NCBI RefSeq assembly: GCF_001194135.2
Contig: NC_068990.1
Location: 24,957,959-25,021,958, forward strand
Reading direction: 5' to 3'
Source: Octopus bimaculoides
Taxonomy: Eukaryota
DNA length: 64,000 nucleotides
Shown: positions 3,898 to 59,356 of the stretch, one piece after another
Layout of the letters: each line of letters begins with the position of its first letter
Numbering within the stretch: the first letter of the stretch is position 1
Notes under the pieces: model-generated
Told to the model about the DNA's origin: nothing
The model's database searches: none
What the model saw: the letters and a program-made list of their open reading frames with translations, nothing else
Program-made: the position numbers and the translations under genes

Positions 3898-5928
3898 CAA
3901 TAAATGATTATAAGTCTACAAAACATTTAATATTTCAGTAATTTTTTTTTTATACAATTCCTAATAATATTTAATTATAAAGATATAATGGGACTTTTTC
4001 AAAACATTGAAAGACTATAGGGGTCCAGAAGAACAAAATAGGAATCAAAGGGATCCATAGATAAAAAAGGGTTGAGAACCTATGCTCTGCATTGTCTCTA
4101 GACCTGCTAGATATAGCAGCCAAATATTCTTCAAATCACACCATGTTGTCTTCATAAAAGGACACATTTGATGATATAGTCCAAGGTACATCATGCGTGT
4201 GTGTGTGTGTGTGTGTGTGGAACAGTTACATCTGGAATGTGGTTTGATCATAAGTTGATTGAATCTAAACAACAACAACAACAACAACAACAGTTGCCTT
4301 AACAACTCTGTGACTCTGTATAACTCTATAGCAGAAGACACCAAACTTTTTCATGGCAGGCCAGATATCTAAAAGAATGACATTCATGGGCCACATAACC
4401 ACTTTGTTCACTACAATACAGTGAATACACAAAAAATAAAGACAACCAACATATTCATTTACCAGAAAGTTATCAAAGAAGGCNNNNNNNNNNNNNNNNN
4501 NNNNNNNNNNNNNNNNNNNNNNNNNNNNNNNNNNNNNNNNNNNNNNNNNNNNNNNNNNNNNNNNNNNNNNNNNNNNNNNNNNNNNNNNNNNNNNNNNNNN
4601 NNNNNNNNNNNNNNNNNNNNNNNNNNNNNNNNNNNNNNNNNNNNNNNNNNNNNNNNNNNNNNNNNNNNNNNNNNNNNNNNNNNNNNNNNNNNNNNNNNNN
4701 NNNNNNNNNNNNNNNNNNNNNNNNNNNNNNNNNNNNNNNNNNNNNNNNNNNNNNNNNNNNNNNNNNNNNNNNNNNNNNNNNNNNNNNNNNNNNNNNNNNN
4801 NNNNNNNNNNNNNNNNNNNNNNNNNNNNNNNNNNNNNNNNNNNNNNNNNNNNNNNNNNNNNNNNNNNNNNNNNNNNNNNNNNNNNNNNNNNNNNNNNNNN
4901 NNNNNNNNNNNNNNNNNNNNNNNNNNNNNNNNNNNNNNNNNNNNNNNNNNNNNNNNNNNNNNNNNNNNNNNNNNNNNNNNNNNNNNNNNNNNNNNNNNNN
5001 NNNNNNNNNNNNNNNNNNNNNNNNNNNNNNNNNNNNNNNNNNNNNNNNNNNNNNNNNNNNNNNNNNNNNNNNNNNNNNNNNNNNNNNNNNNNNNNNNNNN
5101 NNNNNNNNNNNNNNNNNNNNNNNNNNNNNNNNNNNNNNNNNNNNNNNNNNNNNNNNNNNNNNNNNNNNNNNNNNNNNNNNNNNNNNNNNNNNNNNNNNNN
5201 NNNNNNNNNNNNNNNNNNNNNNNNNNNNNNNNNNNNTTGGTGACCCCTACTCTATAGCAATAAACTAGATGAGAGAAAAATCTAACACTGCTGGATAAAA
5301 GAGCATTCTGTGACTTTCCTAGAAAACTGGTTTTTACAGGTAAAACTAGGTTAATACAGATTTAATTGTCTCACCTACAATATATATATATATTTGAAAA
5401 CCCTACAAGAATAGGTGCAAGCGCTAATATTTATAAAACATGTGACATATTAATAAAAATCTGTAAATGTACAACCATCCAGATATCTGAGTACCTTATT
5501 ATTTTTTCTAATATATATATTTATCTCTGTGTGTGTTTGTGTTTTGATAACTGGTGTTGGTTTGTTTACATCCCTGTAGCTTAGTAGTTTGGCAAAAGAG
5601 ACTGATAGAATAAGTACCAGGTTTTAAAAAATAGTTTTGGGGTCAATTCATTCAACTAAAATTCTTCAAGGCAGTGCCTCAGAATGGCCACATTCTAATG
5701 ACTGAAACACGTAAACGATAAAAGGTAAGCAATCCTACAACTGCTCTTTTTTAGAGTTCAAAATTATTTGTTGATTTTCTAATAGTAATCCTATTTTCCA
5801 CTGTCTCACACTGTCCCCTTTCTTTCTGACTAACCCCTAATACTGTAAGAATCAAGAACCACCAACTTGAATTCGTAAATTACAATGAAAAATGAAAAAC
5901 AAACAAGTTTCTTAGAAGTCAAAGTGTT

Positions 5929-6092
5929 TTAGTTTTCTTTGTTTTTAAGTGTTATAGACAAAAGTCTGATTAGATTCATGACTTCTTCCATGGCACATGA
6001 GATGGCTTCCTTCTGGGTCCCCTTTGTGCAGGTGCTGGTAAGCTTGCTCTCATTCTCGGTGACAACCGCCTTGCACTTAAATAGATCAGGCA
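5929..6092 (-). CDS. Uncharacterised secreted protein, terminal exon 3a (PDLFKCKAVVTENESKLTSTCTKGTQKEAISCAMEEVMNLIRLLSITLKNKEN*)
   Basis: Strong polypyrimidine acceptor (ttctttttatcctctatctctccag), phase 1, open to TAA; supported by the paralogous exon at 188-366. Confidence 0.8.
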
Positions 6093-6603
6093 CTGGAGAG
6101 ATAGAGGATAAAAAGAAATGGCAACAATAAGCAGTGATTCTATTCATCAGACAATAAGGGTGGGACATATCTAGTCTCAAGTGGCCCACTCCTCAAATAA
6201 GGTTGTCCATCCCTGCTTTAGACAGTAGACTAGCACCTTATTAACTAATCCAGCTGCCACCATCATGGGTTAGAGCATTAACACATCGATAATCTGATCT
6301 GAAAAGGTGTAATTTATGAAAGAAAAGAAAGAGTCAAACATTGAACTAAGTGGCCATGCAACGTACACTACCTTGAAAGGTACAGTCGACTATATTGACC
6401 CCTACCAATTGTAGACTGCCCCTTATTTCTATGACCTCAAATAAATGAAAGGCAAAGTTAACCTAGCTGGAATTTGAACACAGAATGTAATGGGATGTAG
6501 CTAAATAGCATAAATTATTTTTGTCCAATAATTTACCAATTCCACTACCCACTGCTACCTTATTTTAAGATTTACTCTTCCTTCTTTTGTATCTATTATT
6601 ATT

Positions 6604-7140
6604 GCTATTGACTAGTTTCACTTTTATTGTGGTTCTCTGCAGTACACTTGAGTACAGCTTTGTGTGCCTTGGCTTTGTGCAGTGCATTGTTTGGTTTTGT
6701 TGGCTCTCTTGTATTCAGTAGTGCTATCTTCAGTATGCTGTATATATTTGTAAGTCCTAGCGTTTTTGGTTATGTATTAGTCTGCATGTTTTTCTTTGTT
6801 TATCAGTTCCAAACCACCTCTTATTATTATTAGGATTGTTACTCTTTTTTCATTTCTCTGAGTGATATATTATCATCTGTTGAGATTGGTACATTGATTA
6901 GGAGTCAATTCTTACCCAGTTTTCTTTGATAGCAATATCTGATGAATTATCATTAACCTCTCTGTCTGTGTATATTGGCATATTTCAGAGTATGGTTACT
7001 TTGTAATTCTTTAAAACCTTTTCTGGTGTATACCTACACCACCTCTGTCCTGTTGGTATTCATATTACTAGCACAACTTCCACTGGATATAAGCTTCTAA
7101 CTCTTTCATGTCTCTAGAAATATTCTTTATTGGCTAAAAC
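6604..7140 (-). mobile_element. R4/Dong-like non-LTR retrotransposon 3' fragment (restriction-like endonuclease)
   Basis: Decayed YEHQ..ENYK.ILW..IHTDR..PDIVIK..LLINVPISTDDNISLREMKK and KHADKYITKTLGLTNIYSILKIALL pieces in shifting frames. Confidence 0.6.
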
Positions 7141-7989
7141 TGAGCAATTTGAGACAATGTGGTTGTTTCTTTGTCATTGTTGTCATTGTTGTTATTATTA
7201 TTATTATTATTATTGAGCTAGCAAAACCGTTAGTATGTTGGACATTATTTCTCCATCTTCATGTTCTGAGTTCAAATTTCGCTGAGGTCCGCTTTGCCTT
7301 TTATCCTTTCCAGGGCAGTAAAATAATCAGTACCAGTCAAGTACTGAGGTCCATATAATCAACTCCCTCCCCCCTCAAAACACTGTTGGCTCTATACCAA
7401 CATTTAAAACCAATATTATTATCATTATTTATATCATCATTTTTGTCAACATCAGTATCATTATTATTGTTGTTATTATTATGTACCCATCTACCTACTT
7501 ACCTACCTACCTATCCACCAATCTAAATATCAATCAATCAATCAACATTCTATGTGGCACAGTGGCCAAGTGGGTAAGGTACTACAGTCCAGACACACGG
7601 GACAGCAGTTTGTAACTAAGTGCAGACAAATCATTTCCTCATGTGATAAGTCACTTGGTTTGACTTGGTCTATCTCTGGGGTCAGCATTAAACACATCAT
7701 ACTAACTCAATTGACATTGACCAAAACCAATAATGAGAATCCTGGTACCTGTGAAAGCCTGAAGCCTTATAACAACTTTTGCCATGGTATCTGTAATTTT
7801 TAAGTGTTAAAAATGATAATTTTTGCAACAAACCAGTGAACAAACAGAAATGTATATTAATTAAAATTAATAGTTATAAGCAACACAAGCAATGATTTCA
7901 TTTTCCCCCCTTAGAACGAATCATAAAACCAATGTTAAAAAAGTGCAAAATACTTATTTTATACATACATACATACATACATACATGAT

Positions 7990-8675
7990 GGCCGTCAACT
8001 TGTGACTGAGGAAGTCCATTGCTGACCTTCAGGAACATTGTGCACTCTAGGACTTATATCTTGCATTTACGGCTCCGTTGGTGGCTAATGAGCCCTGCTC
8101 TTGACAAGCATACACGACTGCAAACATTGCAAACCAAGCTTTTCCCATTCACTACACCAGCAGTGCGCTTTCGAGCAGCATGCTTAAGTTCTTCATGCAG
8201 AATACGTGCTCTCTCAAAGGTGTTGACCCCCTCCTTAACCTGCTTCCTCCATCTGTAGTGATGACAGGCATTGTTCTGCCAGTCAGTGTCCTGCATATCA
8301 CAGGCCTTTAATGAGGACTTGACACAGTCCTTAAATCACAGCCTTGGTTTCTGCCAGGGTCTTTTTCTATTCACAAGTTCCCCATATAGCATCTGCATAG
8401 GGATCCTGCTCTCCTTCATTCTAATAAGGTGTTCAGTCCAACATAACTGGTACTTGTGCACCATCGCCTCAATACTCAAGATATCAGCTGTCCTCAGAAC
8501 CTATGTGTCTGGAGATTTTAAGGTCAGGCCAACGTTCAGAATGTGTCTGAGACATTTCTGATAAATGCATTCAAGGATCCTTGCATGACGTTTGTAAAGG
8601 GTCCATGTCTCATATGAGTAAAGGAGCGATGTCAGTACACATGCATGGTACACAGAAATTTTTGTTTGTTTTGGG
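7990..8675 (-). mobile_element. RTE (Bov-B-like) LINE 3' fragment
   Basis: TKISVYHACVLTSLLYSYETWTLY..QKCLRHIL and a C-terminal C2H2-like knuckle VCNVCSRVCLSRAGLISHQRS. Confidence 0.9.
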
Positions 8676-8792
8676 ATGCTATGCATACATACATACATAC
8701 ATGCATGCATGCATACATGCACACATGCATGCTAATATCAGATAGTGAGAATGAGTGCTCAACACCACTTTGGTGGATAAATATCCTTCAAT

Positions 8793-8952
8793 TGTGGGTT
8801 AACAAGGCTACCGATGGTTTCATGTTAAGAGAAATCTCTTAAGAATTCTCCTCCAAAATGGAGATGAGAACCAATGTTCCCATGTGACTCACTTGATAAT
8901 TGCTAACAGATTCCTCATTACATGAAACCACCGGTAGCCTTGTTAACCCACA
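8793..8952. mobile_element. 160-bp MITE with about 45-bp terminal inverted repeats, flanked by AAT
   Basis: TGTGGGTTAACAAGGCTACCG(A/G)TGGTTTCATGT has 1 mismatch in 33 nt between arms; AAT at 8790-8792 and 8953-8955. Confidence 0.85.
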
Positions 8953-11384
8953 AATAAAGTATACATATTATATATGTATTGAGTGTACATACATATATAC
9001 ATACACACATACACACATACACACATACACTATTTAATAACAGTCAAACTTGGCTCAATTCAACTTAAAGCTTTTAGGCTCATCAAATGAACCTATAGAG
9101 ACAGGTTAGTTCTATGAACCTCTGAAGCTTTGAGTTGAATGGAGCAGAGTCTGACTGTTGTTGTATAATATATGTAACTCCTACTAAATGTATTGAGTGC
9201 TGCTTTCTTTCATTTGATCACTCACTCACATATGCGTTTGTGTATACACACACACACACATACACACACACACTTTTGTATAGATACTTACATATAAATA
9301 TACATTGTGTCTGTGTGTGTGTGTATACACATACACATCGATGTACAACACACGCATACATGCATTTATATACACATCTATAGACATCTATGTTTACATA
9401 TACATACAGCAAACAAAACATCTTATATAATATCAGTTTATATATGTGTGTTTGTTTCAACAGTCATAAGCTAAAATAGAAACCAGAACTTGTTTGTAGT
9501 TTACTAGATGTTCTTGTTTATTGTTGTTAGCTGAATGCTCCAATTCATATCTATAACTCAGTATTTAGCCATGCTCTTGCTAATTTGTTTAAGTAGAAAC
9601 AACCAAACTGTATTTATCTGTATGGTGAATCATTGAAATTTATTTCTGTGTTTGGTAGGAAAATAAAAGATATACTTTTGTTCCTAAATATGAATGGTTG
9701 ATAAATAAATTAGGTCAAAAAGGCATAACTTTAAATCTGCTGACATAAATTTTTAGAAAAATAAAAAATGAGAAATATGAATATTTTTTACATAAAAACA
9801 GTATGTAAGGGGAGATGACTCTGATATAAATATGGTGATTTCCTGTTTGAGATTATTAAAAATATCAGTAATGAAGTTGTGTTATACTTCAATAGAAAAT
9901 ACTGATCATGTGAATTAGGTGAAAGCAATTCAGTTTCCTTTTTTTTTATGTTTTGAGTGGTGTAGAAGTATGAATAATTTGTCAAGTATGTACAGTGGAC
10001 AGATGGTGTCAGATAGTTGATGATTTAAAAAAAAAAGAGAGTTTGATAATGCTTCCACACCTCACAATAAAGCACTAAAAGCAAGTAGATTCAAAGGTAA
10101 TATGATATATACCCGATTCTCATCTGCCTTCTCTTTAAATGTCAAATCTAACATTGCTAAAAAATAAATAACTTTAAACTGAATTACAATATGATTGTAA
10201 ACCACCAATATAATCTCAGTTGCAACTGTTTCCCCAATATGAACATTGTAATAGTATACAAACAACTGAACTAAACTAAATTAGGAGCACACATAGAACT
10301 GCTCCTTAACCAGTTATGCAAAGCTGAAGTGATTATCTACGAGGCAGAAGTTGTCTCCACTAAATGAAATCAAAACATCATGTAAACACTATGTAGATAT
10401 GATGGAAGGTAAATTTCAACAAAGATATTTCAACTTTATTTCGTTTTTCAAGAAATGTAAAAAAGAGGAAAGTATCTAAACTATTGAATTATGTTTGATA
10501 TTTTAAAGAAAAACATGTTACTGTCTTCAAAATTAAATAGAAGATTTCTGATAGATGCAAACTATTTAGAAATTGTATAAAAAATTCTAAGTTATGTATA
10601 ACTGAAAAAAAAAACCTCTCATATTCTTTAATAAATCCACAGTCTGAGTGTCAGATGAAAGATCTTTACTAAATGCCAACAACTTGTTAAGTATCCACTG
10701 AAACTCTGGTCACTTGTACTACCACCTGCTTGAATAAATTAATACTCACCTGTTTACCAGCACTCACAATGTCTCTATTTCCCTTCTTTGTTGTGAACAC
10801 CATATCAGTCTCAACAATTTCTTCCCTTTGTACCACCATTCCCTACTAGTAACTCCATATTTTATATAAGGATACACTCATTGACTCCTTTATTATTTCA
10901 AATTATTAATTTCTCATGGCAGATTAAGGTTCTATTTTAAACCAATCCGTGTAAATCAACTCACTATTCACTATATGAATTACACTCATAGTATTTAAAA
11001 ACTCAAAAAAAAAACCCAATACAAACTAATTTATATATGTCACAGACATTTAAGTTCAAGTTTGGTCAATTATTGTTGATTTGTCTGATGATGGTGTAAA
11101 AACATACCTGAACATGAAACTCAGTCATTATCATTATTATCATCATTATTATCATTAATGAAATATAACATTTAACATATTTCATTTAATTATATGTACC
11201 AAATACTCTGATATTGTTTTGTAAAGAACCTATTATGTGGTCATGAAGCTTACTTTCCAACCTCAAGGCTTCAGGTTCAATCCCATTGTGTGGCATCTTG
11301 GGAAAGTGTCTTCTAATATAGCATCAGGCCAATCAAAGAGCCTAGTGAGTGGATTTATCATGTGGAAATACAAAGAAGCTCATT

Positions 11385-11419
<35 letters not shown>

Positions 11420-12167
11420 TGTGTGTTTGTGTTTATATGTGTATGTGTTTATGTCTTCTTGTCTTGACATCACATGATAGTTGTAAACAAGAATCACTGT
11501 CACACAAGCGGTATCATTTGTTTCCAATTTTCCATGAAAGGCATGTTCAGCCATGGAGAAATGTTACTTTGCTTGGGGACAGGTAAGGGCTGGCAAGAGG
11601 AAAGTCATCCAGCCATAGACAATATGCCTCAGTGAATTCCATCTGACTCAAACAATCATGAAAAAATGAATGCTAAAATGATGAGGAAACTTAATTCACA
11701 ACATTTATACCATGCTCGTGCAAGTGTATGGTTTAGTGATTAAGGTGTTGTACTCACAATCATAAGATTGTGGTTTCAATTCCCAGGCTAAGCAGTATAT
11801 TGGATTTTTGTGCAGGACTCTTAATTTCTCACTCTTCCAGTTCACTCAGTTGTAAATGAGTTCCAGCAATAGATAGGAAGTTAACCCTGTGATGGACTAT
11901 CATCCCATCCAGAGGAGAGAGAATGTTGGAATCTCAATCACTTATACAACATGGAAACCAAGTTAAGTTCCTGCTGGTCTTATGAGTTGGTGATAGACCA
12001 AAGTCTAAAAGAGTGGTAGTGACATAACCTTTGTAGTCCCACAGCCCACTCACATACATTGGTGAGACCGATATGATTGGTGCCATAAACCTAAACCAGA
12101 AATTTCTGAACAAGGAGAGAACTGAGAGTTTGGTCTGAATATTTGCAAGAGAATGGGCTCTGTTTAA

Positions 12168-12370
12168 CCTTTTAGCATTTAAACTGACACTATCTGGCTC
12201 AAATATTCTACCTGTTTTATGTTAACACTGACCAGATCTGGCCTCTCACACCTACCCTACAACATCATTCTAAAAGTTAAAAGAATCACATCACTGAAAT
12301 GCATGGTTCATACTAAACAATGTGAATAAATAAGCATTACATTTTAAAGAGTGATTTGAATGCTTAAAGG
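12168..12370. mobile_element. piggyBac-type MITE
   Basis: TTAA|CCTTTTAGCATT ... TGCTTAAAGG|CTAA; internal sequence matches 31202-31420. Confidence 0.7.
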
Positions 12371-12593
12371 CTAAAGGCGGCTTGTTAGGCCTACCATCCT
12401 GGTTAGTTCTTAGACCTGAGTTACTGTGAATGTGATTGGTCATTTGTTGTAGCTGGCTGCCCTTTCTTATAACTGACCACTCTGTTGTGAAACATAAGTG
12501 AAGCTTTTTTTTTTTTTTGCTGTTTTTGCTTTTGCTGTTGCATGACATGTTGTTTATTAGAAATATCAAAAATAAAATAGGGTTTATACTTAC

Positions 12594-12669
12594 ACAAGAA
12601 ACGTTTCCCAATGATGTGGCATCGGTCAGCAACAAAATGAAGAACAAAACTGGTCTCTGGAACAGGTAT
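12594..12669 (-). CDS. Uncharacterised secreted protein, exon 2 (IPVPETSFVLHFVADRCHIIGKRFL+T)
   Basis: T-rich tag acceptor and gtaagt donor; 76 nt, phase 0 to 1, which exactly bridges exon 1 and exon 3. Confidence 0.72.
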
Positions 12670-12815
12670 CTAGTATGAAATACAATAATACATTGATTTT
12701 ACTATTTAAAAAACACATTCTACTATTATATCCAATATCCAAAATAAACATCATTAAAAGAATATTTAACAACAATTTTTCATTCCTTGATCAATCCTTA
12801 CATAAAATACCAAGT

Positions 12816-13190
12816 GGAGGCGCAATGGCCCAGTGGCTAGGGCAGCAGACTTGCAGTTGTGGGATCATGGTTTCGATTCCCAGACTGGGCGTTGTGAGCG
12901 TTTATTGAGTGAAAACACCCAAAACTCCACGAGGCTCAGGCAGGGGATGGTGGTGAACCCTGCTGTACTCTTTCACCACAACTTTCTCTCATTCTTTCTT
13001 TCTGTTTCTGTTGTACCTGTATTTCAAAGAGCCAGTCTTGTCACACTCTCTGTCACTCTGAATCTCCCCAAGAACTCTATTAAGGGTACACATTTCTGTG
13101 GAGTGCTCAGCCACTTACATGTTAATTTCACGAGCAGGCTGTCCTGTTGGTCGGATCAACTGGAACCTTCGTCATCAGAGTGCCGCATCA
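12816..13190 (+). mobile_element. tRNA-derived SINE
   Basis: GGCGCAATGGCCCAGTGGCTAGGGC A-box and GGTTTCGATTCCC B-box head; tail shared with 3565-3700. Confidence 0.75.
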
Positions 13191-13276
13191 AAATTAACAA
13201 ATTATATAACCCCTACCCCCATGAATACCATTATAATAATAAGAAACAGTAAAAATTTATACATTTATAGGCACAG

Positions 13277-13431
13277 GCATGGCTGTGTGTTAAGAAGCTT
13301 GCTTTCCAACCACATGGTTCTGGGTTCAGTCCCACTGCATGGCACCTTGGGCAAGTGTCTTCTATTATAGTCTCAGGCCAACCAAAGCCTTGTGAGTAGA
13401 TTTGGTAGATGGAAACTGAAAGAAGCCAGTC

Positions 13432-13494
<63 letters not shown>

Positions 13495-13700
13495 TGTGTG
13501 TGTGTGTGCGTATGTGCATATGTGTGCGTATGTGTGTGTGTCTTTGAGTGAGTCTGTATTTGTCCCCCACTATTGCTTGACAACCGATGTTGGTGTGTTT
13601 ATGTCCTTGTCATCTAGAGGTTCAGCAAAAGAGACTGATAGAATAACTGTCAGGCTAAAAGAAAAAGTACTGGAGTCAATTTGTTTGACTAAAAATATTT
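13277..13700 (+). mobile_element. tRNA-derived SINE with internal (TG)n (third family)
   Basis: ggctgtgtg.taagaagcttgcttcc..gggttcagtccca head. Related pieces at about 5555-5730(+), 11235-11640(+), 18640-18760(-), 20490-20660(-), 21610-21740(+), 27920-28030(+), 28906-29058(-), 45640-45980(-), 50200-50400(+). Confidence 0.75.
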
Positions 13701-14120
13701 TATGAATGAAACTGTGTGGAATTCTGTCACATGCCAGCATAGGTTGGATGATTTGACAGGATCTGATGAATCAGAGGATCAAGACACACTCCAGTGTCTA
13801 GTCTGGTATGCCCGTTCTACAGCCAGATGCCCTTTCTACAGCCAGATGCCCTTTGTTATACCAACCAATTTATAGAGTGTTCTGGATACTTTTTCCATGG
13901 CACCAGTACTAATTGATGATCGCCTAATACCTTGCAAAGGCTCAGGGCCTGATGTGGCCCCTACAACTGAAGGAGAACAGAAGAGAGGATAGGAGATGGC
14001 TCTACACGGGGAAGAAACGAGGAGGGCTAAGGAAGATGAGCAGAGTAGATTTATAGCTCTAGCACTTGCTGGTTGAACTTTTATTAATTTTAGAATGTAT
14101 AAAAGTAAGGGAATACTTAC

Positions 14121-14351
14121 ATCGCCTTCGCTTCCTTTGAAGAACGACACCAAATGTTCAATGTGGGTTCTCAGGAAACCAATCTGTGTATCCAAAAGTG
14201 GTACTGTGACTTTTTTCAGCAACTCAATTGTTTTGCCACTGAGGCCAGCAATGATTCCAGCCAGGTCTGGTAGACCATGGGTGTTTTCTACCACCAAGCA
14301 ACTAGTCAGGAGGAAAATCACTGCAAAAACAGAAAAATAATATAACACCAT
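14121..14351 (-). CDS. Uncharacterised secreted protein, exon 1 of 3 (signal peptide MVLYYFSVFAVIFLLTSCLVVENTHG, then LPDLAGIIAGLSGKTIELLKKVTVPLLDTQIGFLRTHIEHLVSFFKGSEGD)
   Basis: AAAAATG start, hydrophobic core with THG|L cleavage-like site, 77 codons, perfect gtaagt donor in phase 0, TATAAAA about 80 nt upstream. Confidence 0.8.
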
Positions 14352-15850: not shown

Positions 15851-16910
15851 AACTTCATTATAAGTTTTATTCATTTGTTACTTATTTATGCCCTACCCTG
15901 AAGTAACCCAGGCCCCACCGGGGAGAAGTGTGCACCCCACCACCTTGCAAAACCTTCATCTAAGCCTTTGCCTTCTGTATTCACTCTCCCAACAATTGAA
16001 GTCAAATAAAGAGGGGTCTGTTTGAGGTCTTGTTGATTTAAAGAGAAATGAGGCAAAGTCACAAATTACTGATGAATTGAGGGAGCCTCTACATGGTTAC
16101 TTGACCTTATAGAAATAGCAGCAAGATGACTTTGAAATCACATCCCATTGTCTTAAAAAAGAAGTAGACATATAGTAAAAATGTAATCCAAGATATGTCT
16201 GAATAAATACAGGAATGGTCTTGGCTGAAATGTCTCTCAACCAATGTCTGCTTGATCAGGGCTAAATGGAAAGTGGAGGACAAACACCCATAATTCCTTT
16301 TAGGGTCCTTTTTGTGACAGGTGGACACTTTCCCTCAGTCCCTCAGGTAAGACAGTATGGTTTAGAGTACTTGCAAAATAATTGGAGTCTACCCAAGATA
16401 CTGAAGGGCCAGGCTGGGAGTTAAACAACAACATGGCAACAACAACAACAACAACAAAAAAAAAACTACTTACAGAATAACTTCATTCTGCTAGTTCAGA
16501 TGTCCTGGGTCAGAATATCTTCGCAAGAGAAAACCCACAGCTATTTATCTTTTTGGTTGCCAACCCCAAAACATCAGCGAATTTTCTCAAATGCTCTGAT
16601 GACACATCTCTTGATACTACAAGGTAGGCATTTTTTGTTATTTTTTCTTTTTTATTTTCTTTTATATTTTATTCATTTTTTTACTTTGTCGGTTTGTTTA
16701 TTTCATTCTTTGTTTTTCCTCCTTCCAGTTTCTTTTTTTTTTTTTATCTTTGATGTGAAATTCTACAACTGTTATGACTTCAAATGACCCAAATACAATT
16801 TTATCTTGTTATTCCAGTTCTGTTTTTAATCATCATAACAAATATTCATTAATTAGATATTCATAAAATCTTAAAAAATAATTAAAGAGATAACAAGACA
16901 ACAGTAATAT

Positions 16911-26258: not shown

Positions 26259-28866
26259 CTGCAAAAGAGAAAATTTTAATTCACATTTAATAATTCCTTC
26301 AGAATATTTTATTCATTTCTATTGAATGAAAGGACTAATTACAGAAAGTAAAGAATCTTTCTAAAAATAAATCAAAAGGAAATAATTTGGAGATTGAAGA
26401 TTAGNNNNNNNNNNNNNNNNNNNNNNNNNNNNNNNNNNNNNNNNNNNNNNNNNNNNNNNNNNNNNNNNNNNNNNNNNNNNNNNNNNNNNNNNNNNNNNNN
26501 NNNNNNNNNNNNNTACATATTTTACTTGACTAACATATTTATTAAGCAGAATCTCAATCAAATCAAAATCAAAATGGAAATTGTAGTTGTGGCCGATGCC
26601 AATGCCACTTGACTGGCTCCTGTACTGGTAGCATGCAATAAGCACCATTCATGTGTGGGTCATTGCCAGTACCACCCGACTGGCTCCCTGTGCCAGTGGC
26701 ATGTAAAAAGCACCATCTGAATGTGGTCGATGCCAGTTCGCCCGCCCCCCACTGGCTCCTGTGCCGGTAGCACATAAAAAGCACCATTTGAACGTGGTTG
26801 ATGCCATTGCCACCCGACTGGCTTCCATGCCAGTGGCACATAAAAATCACCCACTACACTCTCAGAGTGGTTGGCATTAGGAAGGGCATCCAGGTGTAGA
26901 AACACTGCTAGATCAGATTGGAGCCTGGTGCAGCTTCCTGGCTTGCTTGCCAGTCCCCAGTCAAACCATCCAACCCATGCCAGCATGGAAAACGGACGCT
27001 AAATGATGATGATGATGATGATGTATTGTAGCAGAAACAGGAGATAGAAGAATGTGACTTGAGGGAACATTGGCTACTATATCTGACTAATATATAGAGG
27101 TGTCACTTGACAGTACATGCATACATATAAACATATATAAGACAGTACGGGGATATTTCTAACAGGTGTAACTGCAATGTATCTCATTGGTATGTGTGTA
27201 CGTATGTACGCACGCACGCATGCACGCACACACACACACACAACAATAGAAATAGTACTATGTGACTTGAGAGTGATTTAGCAATTTTTTCTAGCAGGTT
27301 GTGCTACCACAAAGACATCTATCTTGGCTCACATAGACATATGATACAACATTACATACATACATATATATATATATCATCATCATCATTGTTTAACGTC
27401 CGCTTTCCATGCTAGCATGGGCTGGATGATTTGACTGAGGACAACAAAAAATGAAACAAGAACATAACAGGTGACAACAAAATAGCCAGACAGTTAGACG
27501 ATACAAAAAAGGACAGGATAAAACAAGGATGAGTCATTTAGAGCTTTCTATCCTCAGTCGAGTTCCAGATTATCTCAGCAGTTTCAGTCGGTTACACTCG
27601 AGACTGCTCCAATCTGGCCGGCCCCAAGAAAATCTAAGCTAAGAGCACTAGATTCCTTGGAAGAAAACAAGCAAATGTATACGAAAACAAGGATGGAAAA
27701 AACAGAGAAATGGTACACAATTATAAATACAAACAACAGGACATTAACAACAGGTGTCTTTCAACTAAGGATGAATTAAATTAAGCTGGTATGTGTGGAA
27801 GTGAAGTCTTACGGCAGGGACATAGGAGATGAAAGTCATATATATATATATGTATATATATCTTTTAGCTTTTACTTGTTTCACTCATTAGGCTGTGGTG
27901 ATGCTGGAGCACAGCCATGGACCATGTGGTAAGAAGTTTGATTTCAGGTTCAGTCCTACTGCAAGGCACCTTGGGCAGACCAAAGCTTTGCGAGTAAATT
28001 TAGTCGATGGAAACTGAAAGAAGCCCATCACATATACATTGTTGCCGTGTATTATATAAGAATGGATGTGAGTATATTCTTATATAATGCAGGGCAACCA
28101 TGTATTACTTGTGTAGTAAAACCTGTCCCTCTACCATACTTTGACCTTATAACAACTGTCAGAAAGCCACCTCCATCTCTACTACACCCCCAGCGCAGTC
28201 AAAGGAGTATTTTCTTTGTCTTGCAAGGGACTGGTGACCTCACTAGTTACCAGTTTCATCAAAAAAGCACCAGTACACACTATAAAGTGGCTGGTGTTAA
28301 GAAAAGCATCCAGCCATAGAAACCATGCCAAAGCAGACATTGGAACTCAACACAGGTCCTCTGGCTTGTTGGAGCATGTTGTAATTCATTGCCAATATGG
28401 AAGGAGTATGTTAAATGATGATGATAATCTTCCATAGAGAGGAAGAGTGAGAGAAGAAAAATTAAAGAGAGATTGAAGGAGGAAGAAAAAAAGTTTGATG
28501 TTACACAAACATATTTTAGAATCATTAACTCACCCCGCCACTCACTGCAACTTTCTCTGCATCAATTTGTTACCTATACTGCTTCAACTTTCTATTTTAC
28601 TTTTCGTACAGCAGGGTGTGGTTTGAAGGGGATTTGACTGTTATTTCTCAAAATAAATGCTAGGACTTGTTTTGTAGTTCTGAATCCAAGGAAGACATGT
28701 AATCACTTGGAAAATTTTGTCAAAAATACATTGACCTCCAGTGCTTATTCATAAGTCTAGTACTTATTCTATTCTCTTTTATTTAACCACTAATTTATGG
28801 GACATAAACAACCAACAATGGTTGTAAAGCATTGAGCAAATACAAATACACACGCACACACACACA

Positions 28867-33056: not shown

Positions 33057-34700
33057 CTGGAAAGGTGAAGGAAAACATAACATATTACTCTCATAAATAA
33101 ACACATTAATTCCATTTTTGTGATTCAGTCAACACATAGCTAGGGCAAAGAATGTCCAGGATTTTGGTAAGACAGGTGTGGATTCGAGGATATTGTAAAT
33201 ACACCTTAATTTGAATAGAATTTTCTGCATCAAATTTCTAAAATATGTCACCAACTTTTAGGAAGTTCTCCCAGCTTTTGCAGCTGAGCCATATTACTTG
33301 ATAAAAATGTTTTTCTCTTCATAGATCTTACTGAAGTGAGTGAACTATTTGGGATGAGAAGCAGTGTTAGTGGTAAGGTGTATGTTGAGGTTTCTGTAGA
33401 CCTGTAATATATCATAAAACATAGATGCTTTCTAATGTGAAAGGGATTTTAAAAACCAATGCTTACCTCAGAGTTTATGGCATTAAGTATAGTGAGTAAT
33501 AAATCTCAGTCTAAATACGATGCAATCTGTCACAGGAAGCATTAACAAATGCTCTTGTATCAAATCATGACAGCTAACTGAACTGAGGCAATGTAGAATA
33601 ATATGTTCTGTTTAGAAACACTACAAAATGCCTGCAGTAGATTTGAACACCTGAGCTATAAGCAGGTAGTGCAATATTTAAAAAAATTACTGTAATGGAT
33701 GCTGGGAAGGGATATACTGGGATGCCTTCTGCATCAAAAATTAATAATAGCAAGTAGGCTCTAACACTGTGTGGTAAGCCCAAACAATTTTAATTTATTA
33801 GAAAGACATCCCAAGTAATGATTAAAAAAAATCATTATCATGAATGACTAATTCTATTTAAGAAGAGCAAGGGAGATAACTCCAGAATTAATCCTAATTC
33901 ACAGACAAATGTTACATGCTTCAGTCTTTTTAGGCCTCATTAATAATGCATTATCTACATATTACTACAAAGGATTAAACTGACATATCTATTTAGGCAT
34001 CTTGCTATTATTCTAATGATTATCAAGTTATGATTAAGAACACATTTGAATATGTAGTATCGATTATCTGCAAACAAAAGCATTATATCTATAACAATGT
34101 AATATTTACTTAATTTTGAATAAAACTAACATTCAAAACTGGTTTCAAATATTTAAATAAAAATATAAACAGACTCCAAATATTTGAAATCTTTTTGTAA
34201 ATTAGTGAATGGAAGAGGTCAGTCCTCATGATCTTTGTAGGCCCTTCTTATGCTATCATGTGGGACATCTGCAGTTTATTGTCTGTTAGAAAAACGCGAA
34301 CCAAGTGTGTGTGTCAAATGTTTGCAAACAGAGTGAATTCCATTAAATGTATCCAAAAGCCACATGGTGGTATTGCTATTAAATGTGGCTTAACCACAAC
34401 ATCTCACTCCAAAAAATGGGGAAAATACTCCTCTGTGGTATGTTATTTCAGCAGTAAAATAAGAGTGGTTGTTCTACTAGAAAAAGACAGGAATCTTAAA
34501 CAGAAATACATGTATGTCTGAATAAGCTTATGGTTCAGCAAACTTAGGATTGGTTAACAAGAAGAACAAGGGTGGAAATTGGTTGGGAATACTTTAAAAT
34601 TAACCATTTATTAGAAATATTAAAAAATAAATTTACTAATTAAAAGATTTGTTTAATAAAATACAAGAAATTGTAAAGAGGAAAAAACTTAATAACATAC

Positions 34701-34869: not shown

Positions 34870-37483
34870 CTGAAAGTAGTTTGAAACAGCTATTATCATA
34901 AGATATTCCAATGAGAAGACAAAAGACAAACAGACAGAAACACAGCAACCCTATACACACACAGACCACACTTTTTTTTGTCTTCCAACCACCTTTTCTC
35001 ATTTTCTTTTTGTTTTTTTTTTTTGTCTTGATGAAGGACTAGTGTCTGAAAAATCAAGACTCCTTCCCCTCATTTTAAGTCTTAAACTAATACAACATTT
35101 GTTAAGACTTGCCCCTCCTATGTTGTCTTCTTTTGGTAACCATTGCCCAATATNNNNNNNNNNNNNNNNNNNNNNNNNNNNNNNNNNNNNNNNNNNNNNN
35201 NNNNNNNNNNNNNNNNNNNNNNNNNNNNNNNNNNNNNNNNNNNNNNNNNNNNNNNNNNNNNNNNNNNNNNNNNNNNNNNNNNNNNNNNNNNNNNNNNNNN
35301 NNNNNNNNNNNNNNNNNNNNNNNNNNNNNNNNNNNNNNNNNNNNNNNNNNNNNNNNNNNNNNNNNNNNNNNNNNNNNNNNNNNNNNNNNNNNNNNNNNNN
35401 NNNNNNNNNNNNNNNNNNNNNNNNNNNNNNNNNNNNNNNNNNNNNNNNNNNNNNNNNNNNNNNNNNNNNNNNNNNNNNNNNNNNNNNNNNNNNNNNNNNN
35501 NNNNNNNNNNNNNNNNNNNNNNNNNNNNNNNNNNNNNNNNNNNNNNNNNNNNNNNNNNNNNNNNNNNNNNNNNNNNNNNNNNNNNATATATATATATGGA
35601 ACCCAATTATATTACTTTTTATCTATTTTCATAGTATGATATCAGTTTAATCTCCTCTTTCATAGCCCTTAATCCCAAGATATTACCATTTCCAAATCAA
35701 GTTTTAAGTATTAGATTTAATCCATCAAGTTACATTAATTGTTTTCCATCAAATGTTGTAGATCTTCTCTTTTAATTGTTCCAAGTTTGCTCTTTGTATT
35801 GCATTGCATTACTGAGTAATAAATTAATTAACAAACATTTTATGGATAAATGTTTGTATATTTTAATAGGTATAGGTTGCTAAATTAGGAGGTTATCAGT
35901 CCAGTGGTTCATATCCTGTTACCAGCTCTGCTGAGGGTCTGTAGTTGAAACACTGAATGAATGTTGCAGTCATGCTTTACCATCATAATCAACAAGAGCA
36001 TTATAGTCTATCCTGTATGTTTAACCATTTTTAAGATGGTATGGTAGCATTTGTGAAAGATTTTGTAGCAATTTCTTGCAAATCACATATACCACAAAAC
36101 TAACAATAATTATTAACAGCATTATCAATCCTAAGAACAACAGCCACATCACACTTCAGGTCCCACTAACAATAACAAATAACAATCCCAGTTTGTAGCA
36201 CCAAGCAGACACCCTTATCAGACATGCTAGCATGGACAATTTGATAGGGTCTAACAGATCTAAAGACTGCATCATACGCCACCTACTACTGTCCACTTTG
36301 ACTATCATCGATATCTATGTGTCTATGGCTTGATGCCCTCCCTAATCTCAACCACTTTAGAGTATAGACAAGATTCTTTTTTTCATGCCATCAGTACTAG
36401 CATGTAGCTTATAAGACTGAACCCCAAGAGAAGCAATTTTATGCTACATGATGAGGGGTTAAAGTATGAGAAGGGGCCAGAGTAGAACAGGTTTCTTGAT
36501 GTAGAATGGTAACATAACTATTCACATTTTAGAAGAGAGGGTGTGGGTTAGGGTTACAAAACTAATTGAAACAAAAGCAGTATATTTCAACAGAAATGTG
36601 GTAATGTAAGGGTTAAGGCAGACTTCAACACTATTTTCTAAAATTAATATTATATGTGTCGATGACAAATATACACTAACATAAAAAGTGTGGAATATAT
36701 AGAAAATGTGTGGAGATATATCAATAGCTCTCACTGAATGTGTAATTATGTATAACATTTTTTTTTCATTTCGTTTTAGTGGAAAATGGAACACTTTCAT
36801 TGATATTAATAAGCTTATTGTACACAGTGCTCAGGTGCATTACAACTCGTCAGAAAAGGATAAAAATGGGGATGGAAAGCAGCAGTATGTCAAGTAAAGA
36901 CAGCAATGATAGTTAAAAGTACATGTATAGTACACACAGAAAAGTGGAGTCACGAAAAGGCAAGGTTGCATAGGCACTCCAGTAGTAATGTTGGTGAATT
37001 TTGGGAAACTACTCAATATACATTATACAAATTAAAACTTAGGCATTAAAAGAAACACATGCATACATAACTTCCCATATTTTAATATACTCCCTGCCAC
37101 AAAGAGAAAAAAAGCTGGCCTTGTTTCAATAAAAATAATATTTTGTAAGACTTAAAGCTGGCATATCATTGAAGTGTTCACGAATGATGAGAAAAAGATT
37201 TTGACAAACATAACTGAATAATCAATCAAAGAATTGATAGTAAACTGGTTAATAGTTAACCAATTAACAAATAATAAAGTGAAATTGAACCAGTGTGTGT
37301 GTTTATTATTGGCATAATGACCCTCCCTAGATACAACAAAATTTGTTTCAACATATGCACGGTGGTGCATCAGCATGGCCGCAGCTCTAAGCTGAAACTT
37401 AAAAAAAAAAAATAAAAAAAAAAAATATGTATTCACATCATGAATCTAGCAAATCAAATACAAAAACGAAATAAATTATACAC

Positions 37484-47880: not shown

Positions 47881-48151
47881 TACATACATGCATATACATG
47901 TTTTAAACCCCAGTATNNNNNNNNNNNNNNNNNNNNNNNNNNNNNNNNNNNNNNNNNNNNNNNNNNNNNNNNNNNNNNNNNNNNNNNNNNNNNNNNNNNN
48001 NNNNNNNNNNNNNNNNNNNNNNNNNNNNNNNNNNNNNNNNNNNNNNNNNNNNNNNNNNNNNNNNNNNNNNNNNNNNNNNNNNNNNNNNNNNNNNNNNNNN
48101 NNNNNNNNNNNNNNNNNNNNNNNNNNNNNNNNNNNNNNNNNNNNNNNNNNN

Positions 48152-48460: not shown

Positions 48461-49240
48461 TCCCATAAATAATGCAGTTTTTTCAATTGCATGAACTAAA
48501 AGTTGGAAGGGAACAGGATAAACTACCTGCATCAACTTGCTATAAAAGCAGGTAGTAAATGTTACTTTGTACTTATTCTTAGTGCAAGTTTTGAAGAGTG
48601 CTGTTCAATTTTAACAGCTATTTTTTCAAAGTTATAATGGAAGTGACAAAGATGGACATTCAGCATATTTTGCTTTATGAAGTCAATAAAGGCAACAATG
48701 CAATGGAAAGTGCGAGGAATATATGGGGATTGGACAAGAAGCTTAAGCCAGTATTAACGGTGGTTCCAGAAATTCTGAGCTGGAAACTACAGCCTAGAAA
48801 ACGAGCCTCATCCTGGGAAATCTGTAGAGCCCGACAAGAATATCTTGCAAACCCTGGTGGAACAAAATCCCATCATAACACCTTCACTAGAAGAAAAATG
48901 ACCATCTTTGGTTTCAAGACAAAAAGTGCTTTTCCCTCAGGATAACGCTCACCTACATACAGTAAGGATAACATTCCAAAAGGTGGAGCAGTTTGAATGG
49001 GAAACGATGCCCCACCCACCATATGTGCCGGACATTGCTCCATCTGATCATCATTTATTCTGCAGTCTTCAAAGGCATTTGGACAGCAAAAATATGAATT
49101 CTGCAGACAAGGTCAGAATAGTACTGGAAGAGTATTTTTCATCACAGACAAGTGAATTTTGGAAGAGAGGCCTTGCAAGTCTACCAGATAGATGGAAGAG
49201 CATTGTAGAAAATGTAGGAGAGTATATTTTGGTGATATGA
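48461..49240 (+). mobile_element. Internally deleted mariner (DD34D)
   Basis: TA|TTGGGTCATCCCATAAATAATGC left end, MEVTKMDIQHILLYE HTH, QDNA-(34 aa)-PSD spacing counted by hand, ends ..VENVGEYI. Confidence 0.9.
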
Positions 49241-53605: not shown

Positions 53606-54744
53606 TGTATATATACATACACACGCACAGACACACACTTCTAACATATGTACCTAAATAAAAAAAAAATGAAAAAAGAAACTAAAATATAATTTAATTG
53701 ATAGTAAGTGTAAATGCAGACGTGAAATCAGTTGTATAAAACGATTTAAACGGAATGCGCTTCTAGAGAGAATATTTAACATGGAATAATTTATTTAAAA
53801 AACAACACACACACAACAGAGTTAACTTCTCTTTTATAAACTCTAAGCAGTTGTTTTTATAACAGGATGCAATATGCAAAGGTGATGGAGCAGTTGAATT
53901 GTTAAAGCATCAGACCGTATTTGTCCATCGATATTTGTTCTGGCTCTTTAGATTTTGAGTTCAAATCCCAGTGGAGCTAACTTTGCCTTTCATTCCTCTG
54001 AGGTTGATAAAATAAAGTACCCATCTAGAACTTGGGTTGATAGTATTGGCTGCTCCTTCTCTTTTTAAGAAACCAAAGAAAAATTGAAGAACCAAAAGAA
54101 TAGAAAGTAGTGAATACATTCAGATATTGTGCCCGAATCTGGACGTTTCATTTAGAGTAGCCACATTCTGTTTTGTTAAGCAAACTTGCTAGATACTTTC
54201 AGCTTGATGTTCAAATATATTTCTGGTGTAAGGTAGTTATCCAGGCTTAGTCTTTTTCCCAGCTGTGCAGAGGCCACATCTTTTACTACTATTTTATATA
54301 AGGTCTACACATTTTAACAACCCTCTAGCCAGTGTTGAGTCCATACCTTTGTCTTTGAAAGACCAAATGTAACTTTCAAATTCTATATTCCATTTCTCAA
54401 TATTTTGGAAATAAATAAATATAGTTGGAAAATCATTTTTTGAACAGTCTATCTGCCATACCAATATATCTCTTGAGGGTGATATTTATGGATTTTAATT
54501 GTATTACATATACTACAGTGTCTGTGTTGAAGGATCCACTTAGTTGTTATATAATGTTGTTCCTACATGAACTACTGGTTTCCATGCACGAGTTGGGTTT
54601 CCTAACCTTAGGAAATCTGTATGTATGTTGGACTTAACATTTCAGGTGAAGGCTGCAAACCATATGGTATTATTATGCCTTTTCATTTTAGGAGCTTGGG
54701 ACTGTGGATATAAGCACATTTGTCATTGAATCTTCTTACTTCAA

Positions 54745-55300
54745 GCCTCCTTTCATCTTCTCACATGGCCTCAGACTCAACATGGAGGTTCACATCAAGT
54801 GCCTGGAGGAGGTAGTGCTGCCCTGGGTCAGAGAGTGGCTGTTGGAAGACCCTATGTCTGGCAACAGGACTCTGTACTATGCCACACAAATAGCAGAACC
54901 TAGTCATGGTTGTCAGGCAATTTCTGTGACCACATCAACCTTAACATCTGGCCACCTAACTCCCCAGACTGCAACCCTCTTGATTATTATGTATGGGGTG
55001 CAGTTGAGCGAGAGACCAACAAAACTCCTTGTAACACAGATGAACTGAAAGCAAGGATTATGGCAGCATCCACCAACTTAAACAAGGAGTTTCAGGAGAG
55101 GTTGCAGAAGAGTTGCAGGAGATTCCGAAGACGTCTGGAGGCCATGTTTGAAGCCAATGGGGGTTTTATTGAATAAATTTACTCTTTAGTATTCCAAGAT
55201 ATTTTTATGTAATTTTGGTAAATATATCTGTTAAAATGAGATGTCAGTATTATCTTCATTTTTGAGTAATTGAGACGACAGCTTATTCATTGCAACTTAT
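54745..55300 (+). mobile_element. maT (DD37D) transposase C-terminal fragment
   Basis: QQD-(37 codons, one now a stop)-D in WPPNSPDCNPLDY, counted by hand; ends FEANGGFIE*. Confidence 0.9.
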
Positions 55301-55679: not shown

Positions 55680-56660
55680 TCATCATCGTTTAACGTCCGC
55701 TTTCTATGCTAGCATGGGTTGGACGATTTGACTGAGGACTGGTGAACCGGATGGCTACACCAGGCTCCAATCTGNNNNNNNNNNTGAACCGGATGGCTAC
55801 ACCAGGCTCCAATCTGATTTGGCAGAGTTTCTACAGCTGGATGCCCTTCCTAACGCCAACCACTCCGAAAGTGTAGTGGGTGCTTTTATGTGCCACCAGC
55901 ACTAAGGCCAGTCAGGTGGTAATGGCAACGGCCACGCTCAAAATGGTGTATTTTACGTGCCACCTGCACAGGAGCCAGTCCAGCAGCACTGGCACGATCT
56001 CGTTCGAATGTCTTTACACATGCCACCGGTACAAGTGCCAGGAAGGCGACGCTGGGCACNNNNNNNNNNNNNNNNNNNNNNNNNNNNNNNNNNNNNNNNN
56101 NNNNNNNNNNNNNNNNNNNNNNNNNNNNNNNNNNNNNCTTCGCAAGTGGAGTTTTGTGTCCAATGAAGGAAGGTACACATAAGTGGGCTGGCTACACCCC
56201 TGGCAGAGGCCTTGGATTTAGGTCTCACTTGGCTTGCCGGGTCTTCTCACGCACAGCGTATTTCCAAAGGTCTTGGTCAGAAGTCATCGCCTCAGTGAGG
56301 CCCAATGTTCGAAGGTCGTGCCTCACCATCTCATCCCAGGTCTTCCTGGGCCTACCTCTTCCATAGGTTCCCTCAACTGCTAGGGAGTGGCACTTTTTCA
56401 TGCAGCTATCGTCATCCATTCTCGCCACATGACCATACCAACACAATCGTCTCTCTTGCACACCACAACTGATGCTTCTGAGGTTCAACTTTTTTCTCAA
56501 GGTACTTACGCTCTGTCTAGTATGCACACTGACGTTGCACATCCATCGGATGTCTTCAACAGTCACGGCCCATGTTTCACTGCCATGAAGCATGGTTGTT
56601 TGTACACATGCGTCATACAGTCTGCCTTTTACTCTGAGAGAGAGACCCATTGTCACCAGC
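55680..56660 (-). mobile_element. 5'-truncated RTE LINE (RT C-terminus, 3' UTR, (GAT)n tail)
   Basis: LSLRVKGRLYDACVQTTMLHGSETW..RRLCWYGHVARM..GRGRPRKTW..REKTRQAK*; links the abundant short tails to an RTE parent. Confidence 0.92.
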
Positions 56661-58659: not shown

Positions 58660-58731
58660 CTCCCCGGCGGGGAATCGAACCCCGGTCTCCCGCGTGACAG
58701 GCGGGGATACTTACCACTATACTACCGAGGA
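58660..58731 (-). tRNA. tRNA-Asp: tRNA-Asp(GTC) copy 1
   Basis: 72-nt cloverleaf TCCTCGG...CCGGGGAG, GTC anticodon, intact A and B boxes, downstream T-run. Confidence 0.98.
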
Positions 58732-59356
58732 TAACACATACAAGCCCTTACGTGTGTATGTATATATATATATATGTGTGTGTTTACATATATATTTATA
58801 TATGTATGTGTATATATATAAATGTGTGTGCGGGTACACACATACATACATTCATATATAAACACAGCAATGTTCCTCCTTATAAATAGTAAACAGATCT
58901 CATCCCCATACCCTCTTATAAAAGAGAAAGATACGCTTGATAATGTACTTCAAGCCATACGAACTATCTGAAGAAAAGGCTGGATGGTCAATGATGAAAC
59001 ACATCTGATATTACCTCTGCTCCATGAAGGCAGACCTACCCTGATCTCCAGGAAAACAATTTATAAACACACACACTTTTGTGTTTCTATATCTATATAT
59101 GTATATGTGTCTAGACATTATACTGAAATGAAAATGTTATCGCAACAGGATTAAAGAAAAAATGAACTTGTGAGAGGAAAACAGCAAGATTTATTCGGTA
59201 GATCTCTATGTTGTAGAAGAAATAAAAGTATTTGATTTAATGAATTTGTTACTCATTTTTCTTAATATTCTTTCTTCAAACAGAATTATAGTGACACTCC
59301 TCGGGATCTTCCGTTCATAAAATTAGTTTCTTAATTTACGCTGCTATTTCAGCCCG

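Follow-up and report, generated by a model that had tools for sequence, protein, structure and literature searches.

An octopus gene for a small secreted protein with four tandem terminal exons and a family-wide Gly-(Arg)-Lys-Arg loop

The gene LOC106883259 of Octopus bimaculoides lies at roughly 24.95 Mb on chromosome CM046610.1, where RefSeq labels its product an 'uncharacterized protein'. We analysed this gene within a stretch of 64,000 nucleotides, called the window here, in which it is read from the minus strand. A sequence-only reading of the same DNA had proposed that three segments (14351–14121, 12669–12594 and 6092–5929) are exons with canonical splice sites in phases 0 and then 1. 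This model is reproduced: the joined segments give an in-frame open reading frame (ORF) of 471 nt, and its translation is exactly the 156 amino acids quoted before. Both donors are GTAAGT, and the two acceptors are pyrimidine-rich (ending ...CATACTAG and ...CTCTCCAG). Computation also confirms the four cysteines of the mature chain with their spacing of 14, 14 and 10 residues, the net charge of +1 and an internal Gly-Lys-Arg, whose codons occupy positions 12609–12601 of the minus strand.

A search of 5.8 billion proteins matched the 156-residue product to XP_014789683.1, which is isoform X1 of LOC106883259 (E = 6e-89) and has the identical two junctions. Protein searches also recovered orthologues in Octopus sinensis, Octopus vulgaris (present among the cluster members) and Argonauta hians. 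Because RefSeq uses the same junctions and orthologues exist, the 156-residue product is not a chance ORF. LOC106883259 is a real gene for a small secreted protein whose mature form comprises about 130 amino acids. The gene is already annotated, yet it is unnamed and unstudied in the literature searched: queries by LOC identifier, accession or peptide fragment found no papers on it or its relatives, and a keyword search on octopus neuropeptide precursors found nothing relevant.

Two genomic loci serve as references throughout. L001 is the O. bimaculoides locus (CM046610.1, assembly GCA_001194135.2) and is collinear with the minus strand of the window, such that L001 position 10001 corresponds to window position 16486 and L001 position 26486 to window position 1. 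L002 is the O. sinensis locus, which is gap-free. Although the three proposed segments stand, the gene is longer than the span of 5929–14351 that had been assigned to it. It runs from about 16.5 kb to beyond the window start, and has an upstream exon at 16486–16474 and three further alternative last exons.

The upstream exon carries 13 nt of coding sequence (ATGAAGTTATTCT, followed by the donor GTAAGT) and splices to a strong acceptor (ttctgtttttgcag, followed by TG) at position 14321. Together, exons 1 and 2 read MKLFLIFLL, as in XP_014789683.1, XP_014789684.1 and the O. sinensis and Argonauta orthologues. The start codon that had been placed at 14351 is a real in-frame ATG, but the RefSeq start is the MKLFL of exon 1, and the sequence MVLYYFSVFAV falls within the last 30 nt of intron 1. 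The ATG at 14351 may belong to an alternative first exon, because the O. vulgaris annotation holds both amino termini (P0031 and P0032; the latter, CAI9728594.1, is the longer, MVLYYFSVFA-type form). In O. sinensis the corresponding stretch remains open with a single change (Y to D), and in the protein collection the MVLYYFSVFA form was not found for O. bimaculoides. Both starts yield a hydrophobic signal sequence, the same predicted mature end LPDLAG and the same mature protein. By inspection, the signal peptide consists of Met-Lys, a hydrophobic core (LFLIFLLTSCLVV) and then ENTHG/LP (the slash marks the predicted cut), with small residues at positions −1 and −3, and cross-species conservation begins at LPD(L/I)AG.

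The TATA box proposed earlier sits inside a TA/GA microsatellite. Instead, a TATA-like element, GATAAATAG, precedes annotated exon 1. This element and its flanks are near-identical in O. sinensis, and it may act as the promoter element of the gene.

Exons 1–3 form the constant part of the gene and encode the signal peptide, an N-terminal helical region, two β-strands, the first cysteine (Cys1) and the Gly-(Arg)-Lys-Arg motif (Table 1). The protein sequence of exon 3 is 100% identical in O. sinensis, with no changes at all between the two Octopus species, and the ratio of nonsynonymous to synonymous substitution rates (dN/dS) of exon 2 is 0.23 against the same species. In the N-half, Octopus and Argonauta are 76% identical. 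This half has a net charge of −2 and its N-terminal 18-residue helical segment has a hydrophobic moment (μH) of 0.27–0.37, so the amphipathic N terminus described before is a weak feature; the amphipathic helix is the C-terminal one, with a μH of 0.54–0.61. A cationic, amphipathic antimicrobial peptide released from the N terminus is likewise unlikely, given that the N-terminal chain would comprise 71 amino acids with an isoelectric point of 6.0.

Downstream of the single-copy exons 2 and 3, tblastn against L001 identifies four tandem paralogous last exons, named A, B, C and D. Each encodes a β-hairpin that carries Cys2 and Cys3, followed by an amphipathic helix that carries Cys4. The four are 31–56% identical to one another and keep eleven core positions (C, A, E, L, T, C, A, I, C, A and L), which include the three cysteines. 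The net charge of the resulting C-half is +1 for A, +1 for B, +7 for C and +2 for D. They follow one another in the same order in L001 as in L002, and all four are intact in O. sinensis. The O. bimaculoides RefSeq isoforms X1 and X2 differ in the last exon alone, and the O. sinensis isoforms X1, X2 and X3 use the A, D and C types, respectively.

Table 1. Elements of LOC106883259, in window coordinates unless L001 is given
Element	Position	Strand	Description
TATA-like element GATAAATAG	16541–16549	minus	55–63 nt 5′ of the annotated ATG; read directly
Exon 1, coding part	16474–16486	minus	ATG AAG TTA TTC T (MKLF plus first base of Leu); donor GTAAGT
In-frame ATG extension MVLYYFSVFA	14322–14351	minus	5′ of the exon-2 acceptor; possible alternative first exon
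Exon 2	14121–14321	minus	rest of signal peptide (predicted cleavage THG/LPD), N-terminal helical region, end ...FFKGSEGD; phase-0 donor GTAAGT
Exon 3	12594–12669	minus	strands 1 and 2, Cys1, Gly-Lys-Arg (12609–12601), end ...GKRFL plus one base; phase 1
Terminal exon A (isoform X1)	5929–6092	minus	LPDLFKC...C...C..., C-terminal helix, TAA stop
Terminal exon B, unannotated	188–366	minus	phase-1 acceptor ctctcttcctag followed by TT, then F-VWPAQCTATATEKATGLSATCEGLNPKLAIECAVLKAVNLLKRVAEKLEETTSESRRF; end ...SESRRF, TGA stop
Terminal exon C	L001 30630–30790		about 4.1 kb past the window start; located by tblastn; dN/dS 0.11
Terminal exon D	ends at L001 33931		5′ half missing in an assembly gap (L001 ~33600–33838)

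Exon B is represented in O. sinensis by an intact orthologue (L002 33513–33692) that has the same length, acceptor and stop, with a dN/dS of 0.40. A B-type exon with the WPA motif, the same length and a phase-1 acceptor also occurs in reads of another cephalopod (L005). An isoform ending in exon B is absent from every protein of the collection searched; judged from these sequence features, exon B would nonetheless be used in mRNA. We also considered whether exon B is a relic of a duplicated gene. This was rejected, as the gap-free O. sinensis locus has no extra copies of exons 1–3 and the introns spliced out of the C and D isoforms contain exon B. Poly(A)-signal hexamers 3′ of the four exons proved uninformative.

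The O. sinensis orthologue of exon A (L002 22581–22745) gives a dN/dS of 0.19, and values over the exons range from 0.11 to 0.40 between the two Octopus species. The pooled counts are 18 nonsynonymous and 22 synonymous changes, where neutrality predicts a ratio of 3.4:1 (P = 1e-5). Judged by this substitution pattern, the terminal exons are under purifying selection and constitute old, conserved variants. The conserved order, the intact orthologues and the low dN/dS together indicate that the isoforms are old and conserved rather than fast-diverging. Two parts of the earlier description thus need revision: the 'duplicated' copy is not a second gene but one of the alternative last exons of LOC106883259, and 'fast-diverging' does not fit orthologous exons that evolve in this way.

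The protein belongs to a wider family. An exhaustive HMMER profile search of 1.84 billion representative sequences returned 14 proteins at E ≤ 1e-3 (range 1e-47 to 5e-4), each named 'uncharacterized' or 'hypothetical' at its source. Among them are proteins of the chiton Liolophura sinensis (XP_064596543; E = 9.8e-47) and of the gastropods Patella caerulea (KAK6195262; 1.5e-13), Haliotis asinina and Gigantopelta aegis (XP_041356158; 1.4e-11), as well as two more Octopus paralogues (LOC106874926 and LOC106870724), one of them 63 Mb distant on the same chromosome. A second search, made with the family alignment, returned 17 proteins, all from molluscs, and added further Haliotis (for example, XP_067653224) and octopod members. 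Neither profile search returned a sequence from any phylum besides molluscs.

All family members have signal peptides. The motif C-x3-5-G-(R)KR-x6-10-C-x14/15-C-x10-C is present in all 18 family sequences, including the four octopus isoforms, and a signature of the form C.A.V.E...C...Q..A..CA is common to all 18 full sequences. Outside the motif, the proteins are only about 28% identical. Two introns, one in phase 0 after Ser-Gly-Asp and one in phase 1 two residues after Lys-Arg, are shared by the window gene, the chiton gene (L004) and an octopus paralogue (L009). The significant profile matches, the shared motif and the shared introns together establish that the family is old and truly homologous. 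On the sequences compared, it is an unnamed family, so far known from molluscs only, with no Pfam model and no recognisable fold relative. Orphan secreted proteins are numerous in mollusc genomes; the conservation of this one from chiton to octopus implies a role kept since the early mollusc radiation.

Members differ in their architecture. The paralogue LOC106874926 has a single last exon, and the array of alternative last exons is a feature of LOC106883259 only. Gastropod and chiton members have an additional N-terminal propeptide that ends in Lys-Arg and is followed by Gln, and Haliotis and Gigantopelta have two extra cysteines in the hairpin. Octopods carry tandem clusters of paralogues. 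The chiton protein is made of three near-identical units joined by AKPKR/Q linkers (L004 11871–17544; L. sinensis CM072721.1), where internal exons run from the C-module of a unit into the N-half of the following one, such that the KPKR linkers lie inside single exons. A fused annotation of three separate chiton genes was considered and ruled out, since single exons span the AKPKR/QLVTG junctions.

One database entry that touches the orthologues is of an unexpected origin. MDK0675413.1 (P0006), a 'hypothetical protein' from a 283-bp contig labelled Clostridium perfringens, is a spliced exon 2–exon 3 fragment of a cephalopod orthologue. It is almost certainly animal cDNA or RNA that contaminates that assembly.

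The age and conservation of the family bear on the main suggestion of the sequence-only reading, namely that the product is a salivary-gland venom component or another rapidly evolving secreted effector. In favour of this, the octopus protein is small, secreted and stabilised by cysteines, falls outside known families and has gene and exon duplicates. However, its N-half is well kept between Octopus and Argonauta and remains recognisable in chitons, dN/dS is well below 1 for every exon, and the family is older than cephalopod venom. We therefore regard a venom-type role as very unlikely.

To describe the fold, we used an AlphaFold2 model built with 14 family sequences (predicted local distance difference test (pLDDT) 70; predicted template modelling score 0.61). 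This moderately confident model contains helices within residues 4–44, strands at 49–53, 60–65, 83–89 and 95–100, and a long C-terminal helix at 103–129. In this arrangement the constant exons supply the N-terminal helices and strands 1 and 2, and the alternative exon supplies strands 3 and 4 and the last helix. The least confident part is the Cys1–Cys2 loop that contains Gly-Lys-Arg: of two models, model 1 gives residues 70–79 a pLDDT below 50, and the block mean in model 2 is 54. According to the models, this loop is probably flexible and exposed.

The earlier description of a small secreted protein outside any named family is borne out by null searches with Pfam, PDB sequences and Foldseek. 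Pfam searches with the protein and 12 relatives gave noise only (L27_1, E = 0.11; TSP1_ADAMTS, E = 0.13), two profiles searched against PDB sequences gave nothing below E = 0.1, and a Foldseek comparison of two models with PDB and BFVD had no match at E ≤ 0.001. The weak Foldseek matches are to α/β folds of double-stranded-RNA-binding domains (dsRBDs), RF2 and ribosome hibernation factors.

A dsRBD-like unit had been suggested before, and the best Foldseek match is indeed the third dsRBD of TRBP (6zbk_B), but this match is weak (E = 0.02, TM score 0.41, root-mean-square deviation 7.3 Å) and other dsRBDs score above E = 0.2. Furthermore, PF00035 has no Pfam match in the protein or the 12 relatives. 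The likeness is therefore one of α-β-β-β-α topology and does not support membership. Unlike a dsRBD, the octopus protein is secreted and probably disulfide-bonded; it also has one more strand and, at its N terminus, a long helical region.

The other comparison made earlier was to the anti-lipopolysaccharide factors (ALFs; DUF3254, PF11630), whose fold is known from LALF and ALFPm3. In these proteins a single disulfide closes a cationic amphipathic β-hairpin that forms the lipopolysaccharide-binding domain. To our knowledge, ALFs occur in arthropods and not in molluscs. Both proteins are small and secreted, and have a Cys-bounded loop with Lys-Arg-Phe; in the moderate-confidence model the elements follow a similar order as well, from an N-terminal helix through four strands to a C-terminal helix. 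Membership of the ALF family is nevertheless not supported. DUF3254 has no match at E ≤ 10 in the protein or the 12 relatives, hhalign of the family alignment with ALFPm3 (identical in sequence to 2JOB) gives a probability of 0.3% (E = 0.2), and 2JOB is outside the best 50 Foldseek PDB matches for either model. The octopus protein has four cysteines where ALFs have two, and its Cys1–Cys2 segment is short (14 amino acids with three basic residues); where an ALF has a cationic hairpin, the model shows, at low confidence, a coil that links strands 2 and 3. ALF was accordingly set aside as a family assignment.

An immune function might be proposed even so. Under this alternative, the protein would act as a single chain whose Gly-Lys-Arg forms an ALF-like basic binding loop, making it an immune effector for microbial surface lipids or glycans, with the C-modules broadening its targets. 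The predicted order of helix, four strands and helix, the amphipathic C-terminal helices, the +7 charge of the isoform C half and the octopod clusters of tandem paralogues would all suit such a role, and the Cys...KRF...Cys loop is the only stretch that hhalign aligns to ALFPm3. That alignment is far from significant, however. The loop of family members holds just two or three basic residues, three of the four isoforms are near neutral, and the orthologues evolve slowly, unlike typical arms-race effectors. An immune role also leaves the invariant Gly before Lys-Arg unexplained, and we consider it unlikely.

Gly followed by a dibasic pair is a standard signal for convertase cleavage and C-terminal amidation. 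That Gly-Lys-Arg might be such a site had been offered before as an alternative idea, and it has gained support: G-(R)-K-R is found in 18 of 18 members and coincides with the lowest-confidence loop of the model. The motif, Gly included, is invariant across chiton, gastropods and cephalopods. The boundary between the constant and variable exons lies two residues after Lys-Arg. Furthermore, the KPKR-linked chiton polyprotein, together with the propeptides that end in Lys-Arg, indicates that the family passes through a convertase compartment. We infer nicking of the loop because the motif is invariant, the loop is flexible, the family has Lys-Arg sites elsewhere and the exon boundary adjoins Lys-Arg.

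The explanation that we find best, and hold tentatively, is that a convertase nicks the Gly-(Arg)-Lys-Arg loop, leaving a constant and possibly amidated N-chain held to a swappable C-chain. If this model is correct, the protein would fold as one α-β4-α domain formed from both halves, and in the secretory pathway a proprotein convertase would cut the exposed loop after Lys-Arg. A carboxypeptidase and an amidating enzyme would then leave ...Cys-His-Ile-Ile-amide at the end of the N-chain. The predicted N-chain is constant, with 71 amino acids and a net charge of −2, and the C-chain of 55–61 amino acids would be picked by alternative splicing. The two chains would stay tied by their shared sheet and by a disulfide of Cys1; because Cys1 is the sole cysteine on the N side, any intramolecular disulfide that it forms must bridge the two chains. 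One gene could in this way produce four extracellular ligands or effectors that have one face in common and one that differs.

The same loop invites a different explanation, in which the protein inhibits trypsin-like or kexin/convertase-type serine proteases by the standard mechanism, with the exposed, disulfide-framed ...G-(R)-K-R/F... as its reactive-site loop, or serves them as a decoy substrate, and regulates extracellular or secretory-pathway proteolysis. An invariant Lys-Arg at P2–P1 within a flexible loop between two cysteines, on a small α/β scaffold, is compatible with this, and the layout recalls small α/β canonical inhibitors, a likeness drawn from general knowledge that serves as a lead only. 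Yet no inhibitor family matches the protein in sequence or fold, and Cys1 would sit at P6–P8 rather than the usual P2–P3. In addition, between 13 and 17 residues separate the two cysteines, although reactive-site loops tend to be rigid and constant in length, and the exon boundary beside Lys-Arg would go unexplained. We judge an inhibitor function to be distinctly improbable.

An O. vulgaris paralogue, P0027 (OX597817.1, L003 19680–20085), carries a 130-amino-acid in-frame insertion in the Cys1–Cys2 loop that consists of ten SPSKSYSEIIGKR units, each ending in Gly-Lys-Arg. This array could be taken for a classic multi-copy precursor of amidated peptides, which the DNA rules out: it shows a recent tandem duplication with a mutated donor. 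Specifically, the last 24 nt of exon 3 and the adjoining 15 nt of intron make up the 39-bp repeat unit; the donor G has mutated to C (catCtaagt), and the repeats are read through. The repeats are at most weak evidence for processing.

Several considerations weigh against the nicked, two-chain product. Splicing to exon B, cleavage at Lys-Arg, amidation and disulfide pairing are all predictions from sequence, and the structure model is only of moderate confidence. An invariant basic loop bounded by cysteines could instead be a binding loop or the reactive site of a protease inhibitor, and the expansion of paralogues and diversification of exons are also compatible with a defence protein. The P0027 repeat is very recent and absent from its O. 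sinensis counterpart, P0025, such that it says little about how well the loop tolerates change. Finally, these searches found no family member in bivalves or heterobranchs, which may reflect search sensitivity or real loss.

With respect to function, we have a weak preference for a signalling role of the prohormone type rather than an antimicrobial role, because conservation of the N-half is deep, the charge is close to neutral and the processing signals are kept family-wide. In its broadest form, the two-chain proposal would make the family an ancient, undescribed class of molluscan extracellular ligands, each an amidated N-chain disulfide-linked to a C-chain. Octopods would swap the C-chain through the four last exons, giving four hormones or effectors of differing receptor or target specificity. 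This extension is speculative and, on present evidence, improbable as a whole.

The design joins two features, the exchange of half a domain by four last exons and a processing-type loop at the joint, and is an unusual variant of known themes, those of convertase-processed secretory precursors and of alternative 3′ exons. For example, the vertebrate calcitonin/CGRP gene (CALCA) has an established layout of alternative 3′ exons, dibasic cleavage and amidation. Like CALCA, the octopus gene combines common 5′ exons, which encode the signal peptide and the N-terminal region, with alternative terminal exons and with dibasic and Gly amidation signals. The two have no sequence relationship, and the octopus processing is predicted from sequence. 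In addition, the alternative exons of the octopus gene are paralogous copies that each encode half of one predicted folded, disulfide-bonded domain, whereas those of CALCA encode unrelated short peptides. Cathelicidins offer a functional analogy only: their gene consists of four exons, their conserved pro-region contains four cysteines, and their variable C-terminal part comes from the last exon and is released by proteolysis. They are known from vertebrates only and have a cystatin-like fold. Their variability comes from separate genes and not from alternative exons, and all their cysteines are in the constant part.

Four conserved alternative half-domains constitute an unusual route to diversify a folded, disulfide-bonded protein, and even if the product is unprocessed, the gene is a clean case of half-domain exchange through alternative splicing. 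The Gly-Lys-Arg loop and the chiton polyprotein provide a concrete two-chain hypothesis that is open to mass spectrometry. If the products are ligands, LOC106883259 would offer a compact system in which to study how cephalopods diversify signalling or defence molecules.

The remaining observations concern other features of the window. Introns 2 and 3 of LOC106883259 are filled with CA/TG microsatellites and tRNA-like copies that look like short interspersed nuclear elements. Two stretches on the minus strand, at about 8050–8560 (in intron 3 of LOC106883259) and at 56225–56656, resemble decayed 3′ ORFs of retrotransposons (for example, ...CNVCSRVCLSRAGLISHQRSRKCKI followed by a stop). The first carries stop codons and the second has no Pfam match. 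Transposase-like ORF fragments are present on the plus strand at 832–1212, 48598–49240 and 54704–55048. An ORF at 48598–48942 (plus strand) matches the Pfam Mos1 helix-turn-helix domain (HTH_48, E = 8e-6), and the other fragments are mariner/Tc1-like by eye, with no Pfam match.

Upstream of LOC106883259, a neighbouring gene on the same strand extends from about position 26148 upward (minus strand; L001 1–339; L002 1–93). The product of its O. sinensis counterpart has a Pfam Yip1 domain. In the window, the last exon of this neighbour adjoins both a stretch of Thr codons and an assembly gap. Runs of N mark assembly gaps at about 4480–5240 (between exons A and B), 26400–26510, 35150–35600, 47920–48150 and 59710–60440. 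At the far end of the window, six tRNA-Asp(GTC) genes lie on both strands within 5 kb (58660–63688); ARAGORN and Rfam agree on them, and five have identical Rfam scores.

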